64,000 bases of DNA. Source: Stylophora pistillata. Taxonomy: Eukaryota. The translations under genes and the position numbers were made by a program. Positions within the stretch are counted from its first letter, which is position 1; every line of letters begins with the position of its first letter. The notes beneath the pieces were generated by a model that did not search any database, had not been told where the DNA came from, and saw only the letters and a program-made list of their open reading frames with translations. This document shows positions 52,647-56,830 of the stretch, piece by piece. Location: the NCBI RefSeq assembly GCF_002571385.2, contig NW_019217796.1, positions 638,860-702,859 on the forward strand, read 5' to 3'.

Positions 52647-55600
52647 TTACTCAAATTTATTTCCAACCATTTGCAAGCTCTTTCCCATTCTCGATGACAG
52701 TGTTTCGAGAGCAATATCTAACGGTGACACAATGGTGCCACGAAGGTTACAGTTCTCATCATAATGAACACCAACGACAATGCCAAACCCTGACATGGAC
52801 TTCTGTCCCTCACGTTTTTCAAAAATCACTGCTCCAGAATCACCTCCGAGACTGAATGGTTTTTCTATGTTTTCGAGCAATAAACATCTTCGCCAATAAA
52901 CAGAATCAACATTTGTAGACACTTGATTCGTGAGGAGGTCAAAATACACTACGGTCTCACTGAGGGGAGGTTTCAATGCGATCGGTAGAGGTTCAAAAGA
53001 TTTCTTTATCGAAGTGTGTCCAGTGGCACTTCCGCTCTTACACCATTCTCTCTCCTGCGGGTGACTTAGGACTTCATCCGACGTAATAACATTACCACTT
53101 GGGTAGTTTGCAGTGTCAACCATTTGAACAAAAATATTTCTTTCGAGAGCCTCTACTTTTTCCTTTCTCAACTCAGCAACTGCTGCATCGATGGAAATTT
53201 CTTGTTCGCCGAAACTGAAATTTATGCGCACGTTGCCACGGAAACCAAATGAGAGGTCTGCTACAACCCTAGGGGGGTCATTGAAAAGCTTTTCCAATTT
53301 TTGTGCATTTTCGATGAAATCTTTATAACATCCAGTGTTTTTCGCCCATGGAGGGATTCGATTTTCTGACATAATTTTTAGCTGCCCAAGTGCACTTTCC
53401 AACTCAGGTAAACCGACGGGTTGCCAGTTATCAGGAAACAATTTGGTTTTGGTTTCGGCCATCCGATTCAATAATTCGTTGCATTTACCTAAGTATTCCT
53501 TAAACGAATTCGTGTATTGCCGCCACCCAGGGTGTATTATCTCGTTTTTCTCTGTGCCACCGATCACATGATTACAAGAGAGCAAATAAAATTTTCCATC
53601 ATTATCTTTCACAAAGGCACCTAAGGTCCCATACTTAGCGACCCCTTTGATGCCAATGCTTGCTCCTAGACGTAGGTATTCCCTCCTTTCTTCTGGCTCA
53701 ATTGGATTGGATGGGTTCGCTGCTTCGATCCAAAATCCCTCCACGATGTCTACCGGGAAACGTTCAACAAACTCTGGAATGTTAGTTTCGCCGATTGGGA
53801 TGCGATCTTTGCCAATAACATTAACCATGATGCAAGGCGTGTTTGTCCGCTTCGAATCTTTTACTTTGAGAGAAGGGTACACTGCAGTGATGTTACGATG
53901 CTGGTTGAAAGTGAGAAGAGAAGCGTCAATGATCTTACTAATTTCATCAACTTCGGATTTCTCCAATCTTCTTGACATTCCAGGGGTGATGTTTGGCACA
54001 ACAGATGTTTCTTTGTACAGATCCGTCCATCTTATATCCACATCCATCTCTCCAAAGTACTTACGAGCAGCTGCAATTAACTCTTTTGGTCTGCCGTTAT
54101 TGCCACAGAACAAGTACAGTTGAACGTACACCTGACCCCTCTGTTCATCTCTGTATGGCAACACCCTGATACAATCCTTGTGAAGCGCTTCAAACTTTTT
54201 AATTTTTTCTATGATGTCTTGATACTCTTCTAGGGAAAATAAACACAAGGATATGTAGGTGAATTTCTTTTCTCTTATCAGTGCAGTTGTTGTTGGTCTT
54301 CGGCAGCATTACGGCTACAGATATTAAGTCACAAAAATTAAAGCTGAATACAAACCTGTTGGGTCCGAATTGTAAAATCGTCTGTTTTTTTCTTTGAACA
54401 AAAAGAAATTTATGTTCTAGTAATTTGTGCGACCTAGAAATTATGGTCGTGGTGTTCAAAGTGGGTGTGGCTTAATATCTTGCTAACCCAAGAAAAGTGC
54501 GATAGAGTAGTGTACAGTAAATTGTGGCGAAGTGACGTTTGTGTGTGTTAAATGAACATAATAATTTACCACGGATGAAATAGACTCAGAATTTGTCTCA
54601 GAGCCCAAACAGTCATTTGAGTTGTGGTTGAATGGTTAGCTTCGACGAGCGATCCACATTTTGTTGAACGGTTAGCTTCAACGAGCGATACTCATTTTGA
54701 ATCTATGATTGCAGGCTTTCTTTCGCCTCAACGGGAAAATATAACTCTATGGTCAAATTTTTTACCTGAATGGGCAGAGATTTTGACCCAACGATCAAAA
54801 TTTAACGCCTCAACGGGTGAAGAATACTGTGAATGATTTGCCAGTAGTACCGCAGTCACATTGTGTGTCTGCGGTACTACTGCAGTGCTTATTCGCGAAT
54901 CGGCAAAAATTGCTCACATAATACAGCAGCCAAACACATAAAAATCTCTTGTCTTCCTCGAGAGTCGTCACTAAACCGTTGATGACCTTGATGAATGCTT
55001 CCACAAGCAATTAAAGATATCTATATAAAACACTGATCTCGTTTATCGCGTTCTTGATTTCTAGCAGAGCAGGAGGGCTGTACACAATTTTACAAAATGC
55101 TACTAAATGCTGATATTTTACTAAATGCCACGTAGCTAAACCCATTTGTTTTTTTTCCTTTTATGAAATCATTCACTGTTTAGTGGTAAGTTGCTTCAAT
55201 TTGTTTCATGGATTGAGTTAATACACTTTTCAATTATGTAATTAAAATGTTTTCAAAATAAAGTACATCCGATTGGTATTCTTTTTGATGATATTACAAA
55301 CAAACTTTTTCAAAAGACAATACACTGTTCAATTCACAATATGAATAACAAAGCTTGTACACTCAAAGAAAATTAATCAATAATAACCCACTAGGATTAC
55401 AGGCATTTTCTTTGTTAGCTCCTATTACTGTCCTCAAGCTCGACTGAGCAAACTAAGCGAAGCGCTTCCAATGTTGCAATGTGACGTCCTATTGGCAATG
55501 ATCATTTGACGGCGGCTTATACCAGAGAACAACAGAGTCACCCCCTCTCTCCTGGGTGATAGAGATAATTACACAAAATATCATTATAAACCCACACTTC

Positions 55601-56830
55601 ATTTACTAGGTGTAATTTAAAGAATTTTACCTTGTGTGGAACGAAGGCTGACATAGTGTAGTTCATGGATGTATCCCAACACAAGTGTCCTGCTTTTGTC
55701 AACAGGACTTGGTGACGGCATGATAACATCGTGAGCAGCTGAAGGACTGACCACACGCACGCATGTTTGGTAGCAGTTTGCTGCGGCAAACAGAATAATA
55801 TGGTCACCCCAAGTGCCATCTTGCTCCATGTCTTCTGAGTAATCAGCCCATGATTGATATCCAGGGACGAAGTTAAACAGATTTGTTTCATCCGGCTGTG
55901 AGAAGAGTCAAAATAGAGAACGAAACTTAGAGTGTAAATTCAATGAGTACAAGTTGAGTACGTTGGAAGGAGTCATCAGATGAGTAAATAACAAAGAGAT
56001 ACTACCCAACAGTGAGAACGGATAATAACCAATCAAAGCAATGAACACAAGGATCTACATTTGATGTAGCAGTCTCAACTCCTGAATTTTCCCTTCTGAA
56101 ACATCGATTATCTAGTGTCCACCTTATCCAGAGTCAAGGTTCTCCAATTTGGATTGTCCCGTCTGGGGGAGATTCAAGTGCAAACTACTTTTAAAAAACC
56201 TTGGACTGGCCGTTTTCTGCACAGGACTAAGCCCTTTTCACAAGGTCTGAATTCATCTGTGACCCGGACATGTCTCTACAAAAACTTTTGAACTACTCAG
56301 CGTGTTTTTACGGGCAATCTAGAAATATGAAATATTGTTCTCCGGAAAAAGGGTGAAAAGGGGTGGATATTTACCAAGGCGAAGAGGCAAAGTAATTATA
56401 ATTATCCACCATTTCCACCGACACTGAGGTAGAAAAATATTTACGTACAAACCAGAAGCCGGTGAATGGTATTTGCTAATCACTAACCATAACCAATGAG
56501 TGTGCAATGTGGTTTCTACTAAAAGCTGATATCAGAGTATTTATGATCCTTATTATCCCCTACAGGAGGAGTAGTGATGTATTGGCTAGTTGGCCCACAT
56601 GTAGATCTAACCTTTACGGTGCTCATCAACTTACTAGTTTAGGGTTTTTTCTGAGGTACTGGACCAATCTTTGTCTTAATTCGTTAAGTTTGAGTTTGAT
56701 TCCCCTGGCAATTTCCAGTTGATCTGACAAAGCATAGAACAAGCAATTTCCTGATCCATCATTGTCAACAATTCTGAAGCCCTTGCGTGAAGCAGTTTTC
56801 TTCAACTCAATTTTTAGGCCTGTCTTGTCA
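52647..56830 (-). CDS. OTU deubiquitinase - NAL1-like trypsin-type serine protease fusion (5' end uncertain)
   Basis: Exons ~56830-56635 (IVDNDGSGNCLFYALSDQL), 55895-55631 (GTWGDH...ELHYVSL) and 54229-52647 (GTLGAFV...LLSCNHV, SIDAAVA, KSGSATG, FSLGGDSGAV). GT-AG junctions in phase 0 and phase 1 keep the frame; no internal stops. Confidence 0.85.

Follow-up and report, generated by a model that had tools for sequence, protein, structure and literature searches.

A coral gene joining a predicted OTU deubiquitinase to a NAL1-like serine protease in Stylophora pistillata

In a 64,000-nucleotide stretch of the genome of the coral Stylophora pistillata (hereafter the window, in which all coordinates are given), three exons on the minus strand carry the motifs of an OTU deubiquitinase and of a serine protease. 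Do these exons belong to one gene, what kind of protease is it, and what might such a gene do? A sequence-only reading of the window had proposed a fusion of an OTU domain with a protease of the kind of plant NARROW LEAF1 (NAL1) and related bacterial enzymes, working inside the cell, possibly as an immune or cell-death module, with a protease domain that was horizontally acquired or patchily retained. We found that the OTU and protease exons form the 3' part of a longer gene that is already annotated and uncharacterized. The 3' half of this gene encodes two predicted hydrolases on one cytosolic polypeptide, an OTU cysteine deubiquitinase and a serine protease. On balance, and with moderate confidence, we regard it as a real, expressed and lineage-specific gene that was built by exon shuffling and that probably serves as an oligomerization-activated effector in defense or cell death.

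The three exons, labeled A, B and C (Table 1), have canonical splice sites and keep the reading frame, with intron phases of 0 at the A/B joint and 1 at the B/C joint. Exon A encodes SVESIGRLQQ, FRIVDNDGSGNCLFYALSDQL and RKNPKL and ends at a GTAAGT donor. Exon B follows an acceptor ending in cacag, runs from PDETNLF through GTWGDHIILFAAANC to YIHELHYVSLRSTQ with YIHELHYVSL within, and has a phase 1 donor, GTAAAA. Exon C, behind an acceptor ending in ttccctag, is one open frame of about 1.58 kb that holds PCIMVNVIGKDRIPIGETNIPEFVERFPVDIVEGF, LLSCNHVIGG, ISIDAAVAEL and LGGDSGAVIF. Every OTU and protease motif quoted in the sequence-only reading was found where it had been placed. The exons are part of a 1085-residue GenBank protein, 'OTU domain-containing protein [Stylophora pistillata]' (here P0098), which we mapped at 96-100% identity onto seven minus-strand exons; exons A, B and C are the last three and match it at 100%. 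The first two exons of the GenBank model lie beyond the end of the window (extended coordinates 73205-72372 and 65343-65170), and two short linker exons that it predicts lie within. The precomputed Pfam entries for P0098 and for an 817-residue NCBI model, LOC111329281 (P0001), list the OTU domain only and leave the protease part unannotated.

RNA data agree that the OTU and protease exons are spliced together. We mapped four RNA runs onto positions 52400-57400 and drew on assembled contigs of two studies (X1 and X4) and on stranded raw reads of a third (X24). The A/B joint, 55895|56635, was present with GT..AG ends in one X1 contig and one X24 read, and exon B was joined to exon C in contigs of both X1 and X4 and in one X24 read. 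This second joint departs from the predicted letters at two places but has the predicted length, which preserves the reading frame. X24 reads covered exons A, B and C to a depth of 0.75-3.2 and the introns to a depth of 0. All X24 first mates mapped to the plus strand, which identifies the RNA as minus sense. Ahead of exon A, an X4 contig runs on for another 153 nt (past 56890), so that at least one further 5' exon must exist. Together with the complete identity of P0098 to the exons, these joints bear out the claim that OTU and protease share one spliced frame.

The OTU part reaches the Pfam cut-off when both of its exons are read together. Measured on the database protein P0098, the joined product scores 46.4 bits against Pfam OTU (PF02338; E 7e-12) and passes the cut-off of 23.3; exons A and B singly score 19.9 and 18.4 bits, below that cut-off, and each covers half of the profile. 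Exon A carries the motif DNDGSGNC (Cys codon 56743-56745) and exon B carries WGDH followed by HELHY (His codon 55656-55658). We take the Cys of DNDGSGNC and the His of HELHY to be catalytic, from what is generally known of OTU enzymes. The domain resembles established OTU deubiquitinases (PF02338, such as the OTUD family) in its Asp, Cys and His motifs and in passing the Pfam cut-off, and differs from them in being encoded by a two-exon cassette that recurs at no fewer than 45 loci of the Stylophora genome. A phmmer search of PDB sequences with P0098 returned no solved OTU relative, and the literature searched held no description of an OTU domain fused to a serine protease.

The protease module occupies the whole of exon C, and its residues are numbered here along the 526-codon product of this exon. 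It consists of a ferredoxin-like subdomain that is conserved across the anthozoan family, a second small subdomain and a chymotrypsin-fold domain (Table 1). The putative catalytic triad is His220 (codon 53568-53570), Asp347 (53187-53189) and Ser464 (52836-52838), all three invariant in an alignment of 27 homologues. The nine Cys residues of the exon are not conserved as pairs, and C132 and C218 alone are invariant in the same alignment. AlphaFold2, run on the 27-homologue alignment, modeled the module with a predicted local distance difference test (pLDDT) score of 84, and the first 171 residues, modeled apart, with 86. His and Asp are separated by 127 residues, compared with 57 in rice NAL1 (H234/D291; PMC12012508). 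The long insertion that had been noticed between them is thereby confirmed, and in the model it forms four helices as assigned by DSSP (235-257, 273-290, 293-297 and 299-315).

Fold and profile comparisons both led to NAL1. In plants NAL1 is a known yield gene, and its product is an unusual protease that forms a cage. With the AlphaFold2 model as query, Foldseek placed rice NAL1 at each of the first 34 ranks among its PDB matches (E about 1e-14), ahead of alpha-lytic and streptogrisin proteases at about 1e-6. VIA-align superposed model residues 172-526 on NAL1 183-449 with Z 20.8 and a root-mean-square deviation of 3.2-3.3 over 234-240 residues, and the S1E alpha-lytic and streptogrisin proteases with Z 19.4-19.7 over 181-190 residues. 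When the family profile was compared with the PDB, NAL1 chains were the sole meaningful solved match (E 3e-4); the stretches YPVDIVDGF...GTLGA...HV and GDSG were aligned, and the coral PVDIVEGF was paired with DVDVVE-F of NAL1. Exon C and the 27 homologues had no match to Pfam Trypsin (PF00089) at E <=1, S1A chains were absent from the fold matches listed, phmmer found no match for exon C among PDB sequences, and the PADLOC defense models gave no match either. The fold and profile matches support a protease of the NAL1/alpha-lytic kind rather than an animal S1A trypsin, as the sequence-only reading had held.

Rice NAL1 (PDB 8PMG, 8PN2, 7Y77 and 8HAS) and the coral module share the chymotrypsin fold, the order of catalytic residues, a cytosolic setting, a small beta-rich domain directly in front of the protease, and the motifs VD(V/I)VE.F, GTLGA and GDSG. 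They are about 18% identical, and the coral protein differs in the ferredoxin-like subdomain that takes the place of the NAL1 N-terminal domain, in the helical insert and in the fusion to OTU. Residues 89-172 of NAL1 form an ATP-binding domain (ABD; PMC12012508), and coral residues 89-171 align to NAL1 90-176, colinear with the protease match (Z 5.6 over 80 residues, 18% identity, weak taken alone). The S1E proteases (alpha-lytic protease, Streptomyces griseus proteases A and B) have a double beta-barrel core that superposes almost as well as that of NAL1 and, like the coral protein, a region of about 170 residues ahead of the protease. They are secreted, stabilized by disulfides and made with a pro-region that catalyzes folding and is cleaved off, whereas the coral protein lacks a signal-like N-terminus. 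The match of the coral N-domain to the S1E pro-region was not significant (Foldseek E 0.04), with Z 6.5-6.6 to 'prodomain-like' proteins. To judge by reading the sequence, the N-terminus of P0098 does not resemble a signal peptide, and this, with the lack of conserved Cys pairs, agrees with the proposed intracellular location. We conclude that the coral protease belongs to a eukaryotic family with NAL1 and the alpha-lytic-type proteases of bacteria as distant relatives.

Where does this protease come from? A word search with exon C gave 96 homologues, down to E 1e-56, among them P0001 at 60% identity, and an exhaustive profile search collected 2192 representatives at E <=1e-3, 372 at <=1e-10 and 87 at <=1e-30. 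Named members come from the corals Montipora capricornis and Dendronephthya gigantea (an octocoral), the brachiopod Lingula anatina (two proteins), the scallop Mizuhopecten yessoensis and, in the Glomeromycota, the fungi Rhizophagus clarus, R. irregularis, Diversispora epigaea and D. eburnea. In pairwise BLASTP the window exon matched the Lingula CARD-NACHT protein at E 7e-18 and the R. clarus protein at E 6e-21, and in the comparison with Lingula and Rhizophagus residues 89-171 were conserved best, at 35-36% identity. The proteins of Lingula (XP_013389014 and XP_013401761), Mizuhopecten (XP_021371553) and Rhizophagus/Diversispora share the ABD-like subdomain and the triad protease with the coral module (profile E 1e-21 to 1e-35). 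Both OTU and the ferredoxin-like subdomain are missing from them, as is most of the helical insert; they carry other N-terminal partners and are uncharacterized. Read by eye, the Lingula sequences have a shorter His-Asp spacing.

The partners ahead of the module vary from protein to protein. In Lingula it follows CARD and NACHT domains (XP_013389014) or Roc and COR domains (XP_013401761), the source of one R. irregularis cluster calls it a Crinkler-N-domain protein, and TPR repeats precede the protease in one member among sequences apparently from Tara coral metagenomes. We considered whether the Tara/ENA homologues could be bacterial; this is unlikely, since the one contig viewed, from a Tara metagenome, was gene-poor, resembled eukaryotic DNA and carried the module on a lone open reading frame. 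In Dendronephthya gigantea XP_028414796 (P0122), an Asparaginase_2 (Ntn-hydrolase) domain stands ahead of the module, either as a further partner or through a merged gene model.

A gain of the protease from bacteria by horizontal transfer would fit the patchy distribution among animals, and in the protein-language-model features of the ESM Atlas the clusters ranking just behind the Cnidaria cluster are bacterial, some of them partly annotated as Nal1_C or S64. Proteins of bacteria and plants are neighbors at the level of these features only, and are much more distant than the eukaryotic relatives: all named relatives that HMMER ranked nearest belong to eukaryotes, namely three animal phyla and the Glomeromycota. 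A pattern scan built on the family alignment found no relative in 185,579 prokaryotic species genomes, a weak test since it needs near-exact motifs. The module is, moreover, a spliced phase 1 exon of a multi-exon gene, and its G+C content is that of its surroundings. We therefore consider transfer from bacteria very unlikely; like the horizontal acquisition that the sequence-only reading allowed for, it is neither needed nor supported. Its other suggestion, patchy retention, agrees with the scatter of the family over hexacorals, an octocoral, Lingula, a scallop and Glomeromycota. The literature searched contains no description of the protease family in animals.

Within the Stylophora genome we counted at least nine copies of the protease module, besides relics. 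We refer to the contig of the window as C13 and to other contigs of the same genome as C131, C754, C1552, C366, C302, C1990 and C1463. P0001 is 100% identical to C131 and has the same OTU and protease layout as the window gene. The protease tree reads (C1552,(C754,(C13,C131))), with 95/93 support for C13 and C131 together. A survey of the N-terminal partners, which the sequence-only reading had called for, found the OTU exons in two of the four close paralogues, C13 and C131; near the copies of C754 and C1552 there is no OTU exon within about 14 kb upstream, and linker exons are present. Linker exons similar to 59044-59118, encoding EKLVGQQD..., also precede protease paralogues, and P0097, the NCBI model of C754, splices a linker exon directly to the protease exon. 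The copies at C754, C1552, C366, C302, C1990 and C1463 each form a single terminal exon behind an acceptor. P0097 itself has 1292 residues, with two N-terminal domains, a partial and a full protease copy, and probably merges a tandem array into one model. The OTU-protease fusion is young and confined to two sister paralogues.

The OTU exons, for their part, belong to a much larger set. Exon searches located the pair with identical borders at >=45 loci, and window segments 57459-57289 and 56975-55285 align to at least eight other loci at 80-90% nucleotide identity, contiguously once an element resembling a miniature inverted-repeat transposable element (MITE) between them is left out. The repeated unit thus spans about 2 kb (55285-57459, minus strand) and takes in the exons, the intron between them and some 350 bp of flank on the 3' side. 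Its copies end at a shared 3' edge and reach to differing extents in the 5' direction; those compared include loci L016, L028, L030-L034, L036 and L037. At other loci its same-strand neighbors are Death, LRR (LRR_6), kinase and CAP-Gly exons. The unit could be a mobile domain cassette or the product of a recent family expansion. All modules of the gene have phase 1-1 borders (linkers of 75 and 84 nt; OTU pair of 254 + 265 = 519 nt), so that OTU can be gained or skipped in frame. As we picture the origin of the gene, the ancestor of the two sister paralogues would have received the unit at a point after the linker exons and before the protease exon. A truncated protease pseudo-exon (57699-57462), cut at codon 82, adjoins the OTU unit at its 5' edge (57459); the intron ahead of it (58272-57700) is homologous to the introns before the protease exons of paralogues, and this homology is repeated before the intact exon.

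The same observations allow that OTU is a passenger, a mobile or lately amplified unit that came to lie in an intron and is present in a minority of transcripts, and that the functional product consists of linker and protease, as at C754 and C1552. The number of unit copies, their high identity even in the intron, their common 3' edge, the frame-neutral skipping and the sister paralogues without OTU all fit this view. It has to accommodate, on the other side, the A/B and B/C joints seen in RNA of several runs, two OTU exons whose frames and catalytic motifs are intact although their nucleotide sequence differs by about 20% from that of other copies, and the retention of the OTU-protease layout by two paralogues. 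We regard the passenger role as rather unlikely and favor a gene that encodes both predicted enzymes.

How far the gene extends upstream is less certain. Exon 1 of P0098, outside the window, has no Pfam match. Among five exon-1 homologues, three keep RN..CH and have HEPN_DZIP3 (PF18738) as their top match, at E 2e-4 to 1.3e-3 and below the cut-off, and the ESM Atlas clusters nearest to exon 1 are HEPN_DZIP3 (score 0.85), which we treat as a lead only. Exon 1 of P0098 itself reads RNCLRL, the His of the R-N-x-x-x-H motif being lost. Intron 2 of the GenBank model (65170 to 59118) jumps over a dead protease copy, and the HEPN-like exons may consequently belong to a different, decayed gene. The 1085-residue model would then be a chimera of two tandem genes, of which the upstream one, with HEPN-like, linker and protease parts, has died (relic at 63.2-59.7 kb), and the real transcript would start at or near the linker exons. 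This is a real possibility, which we place somewhat short of an even chance. In its favor, the intron spans not only the degraded protease copy but also a reverse-transcriptase-bearing insert, and P0001 starts in an exon homologous to model exon 2, without the HEPN-like domain. Yet the exons are phase-compatible, the single model Montipora P0102 unites the protease with an N-terminal domain of comparable kind, and the RNA contig that extends upstream of exon A, the fifth exon of the model, shows that transcription goes further, although the destination of its 153 nt was not placed.

What the protease does can be approached through its relatives. NAL1 is active only as a hexameric cage, which sets its triad in the active geometry (PMC12012508). 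In Lingula the relatives end proteins that resemble immune receptors, and for this reason we think that the module is probably a proteolytic output of invertebrate defense or cell-death signaling. By analogy with the NAL1 cage and the CARD-NACHT and Roc-COR switches of Lingula, the protease would become active on oligomerization and would then cut selected cytosolic proteins of a defense or cell-death pathway. The tethered OTU domain might strip these substrates, or the enzyme itself, of ubiquitin or a ubiquitin-like protein, and the DZIP3-like HEPN domain, its catalytic His lost, could act as an adaptor if it is in the same transcript. The immune or cell-death role suggested by the sequence-only reading thereby gains indirect support, through the Lingula architectures, the Crinkler-N name in Rhizophagus and the Death, LRR and kinase exons beside other OTU cassettes. 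More broadly, we tentatively propose, well short of an even chance, that animals and glomeromycetes have an undescribed NAL1-like family serving as an oligomerization-activated death or defense effector behind NLR-like CARD-NACHT, ROCO, TPR, HEPN and OTU domains, together with a mobile, intron-containing phase 1-1 OTU cassette of about 2 kb that builds multi-enzyme genes.

The closest solved relative suggests a different function. NAL1 degrades transcriptional regulators, cutting the corepressor TPR2 and the factor FZP according to PMC12012508 and its reference 11, and the coral enzyme could likewise be a regulatory, non-immune protease whose OTU domain tunes its own stability. The family has, against this, expanded in a lineage-specific way, has left pseudogene relics and combines with variable partners (OTU, TPR, CARD-NACHT, Roc-COR and Crinkler-N), features typical of conflict-related rather than housekeeping families. 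A regulatory role seems unlikely to us, and we retain the defense or cell-death effector as the preferred reading.

Several results weigh against this reading and have to be set beside it. The B/C joint was reported as 54230|55635 with three unplaced letters, compared with the predicted 54229|55631; of the check proposed for this junction, the joining of the exons in three studies and the length stood, whereas the exact letters may differ. The three odd letters at 54230/55635 may come from aligner trimming at a repeated AAG, or from an allele. The gene is weakly expressed, at a depth of about 2 in 1.4 billion letters read. The OTU cassette can be skipped in frame, and isoforms without it may predominate. 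In a nine-row tree of concatenated OTU exon peptides the C13 and C131 cassettes were not resolved as sisters, so that two separate insertions or gene conversion are possible, and the GenBank intron that spans the dead protease copy tells against a single long gene. As to the kind of protease, NAL1 and the S1E proteases are tied within 1-1.5 Z units in VIA-align and the ABD match is slight by itself. Exon C reaches 11.8-11.9 bits (E 0.13) against Pfam Nal1_C, compared with a cut-off of 26.1; the best E among the 27 family members is 0.034, with no match anywhere in the genome, and NAL1_N (NAL1 residues 1-88) was matched by two of the 27 at E 0.1, again short of its cut-off. We accordingly call the module NAL1-like and not a member of Pfam's family. 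Finally, the proposed mechanism is reasoned from NAL1 and from neighboring domains.

Table 1. Features of the locus, in window coordinates, with the evidence for each
Feature	Position	Strand	Evidence
OTU exon A (first OTU exon)	56635..56888	-	Pfam OTU profile positions 2-40; P0098 residues 386-470; RNA joint to exon B
OTU exon B (second OTU exon)	55631..55895	-	Pfam OTU profile positions 61-119; splice sites; RNA joints on both sides
Last exon C, whole protease module	52647..54229 (coding 54229-52650, stop 52647-52649)	-	526 codons and a split first codon; P0098 residues 559-1085, 100% identical; RNA depth about 2 throughout, with contig coverage
Ferredoxin-like alpha/beta subdomain, residues 1-76	54000..54227	-	AlphaFold2 pLDDT 84-86; generic fold matches, Z <=7.8; RVLPY and FG.M conserved
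NAL1-ABD-like subdomain, residues 89-171	53715..53963	-	VIA-align Z 5.6 (weak alone); holds HRNITAV, PCI.V.V.GK..IP and PVDIVEGF
Chymotrypsin-fold serine protease domain, residues 172-526	52650..53714	-	Fold matches and conserved triad
Helical insert between His and Asp, residues 235-315 (about 85 residues)	53283..53525	-	DSSP helices in the model
Linker exon, 75 nt, phase 1-1	59044..59118	-	P0098 residues 335-359; flanks tttag and gtaact; predicted by the GenBank model
Linker exon, 84 nt, phase 1-1	58533..58616	-	P0098 residues 360-387; acceptor ttttcag, donor gtaact; predicted by the GenBank model
MITE-like repeat, about 315 bp, intronic, inside the OTU unit	56976..57292	.	At least 1287 candidate genome copies, scored ones 94-95% identical; internal inverted part
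Truncated protease pseudo-exon, residues 2-82	57462..57699	-	Two stops and a frame shift; tblastn 64-65% identity
Older degraded protease copy, residues 27-521	59675..63231	-	At least nine stops; within intron 2 of the GenBank model

The remaining features of the locus are repeats and relics. RNA depth is very high on both strands at 56.9-57.4 kb because the MITE-like repeat there has many copies in the genome; its flanks are contiguous at other loci, and Rfam gave no match for the high-depth stretch at 56.7-57.7 kb. An insert of about 2.2 kb, holding fragments of a reverse-transcriptase open reading frame (about 61.0-62.4 kb), interrupts the older dead protease copy. Elsewhere in the window, a long open reading frame of 789 residues lies on the plus strand at 44529-46898.

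The locus displays steps in the assembly of a multi-enzyme gene: exons of symmetric phase, dead protease copies and a repeated OTU unit. If the interpretation of that unit is true, it is a transposable 'domain cassette' from which new multi-enzyme genes are built. Relatives of NAL1 in corals, a brachiopod, a scallop and mycorrhizal fungi, often behind domains of the immune-receptor type, were undescribed in the literature searched, as was a serine protease module with an ABD-like part in animals. If their proposed role is true, they represent a new class of proteolytic effector in invertebrate innate immunity, of relevance to coral health, and a NAL1-like effector activated by oligomerization would be the serine-protease counterpart of caspase recruitment.

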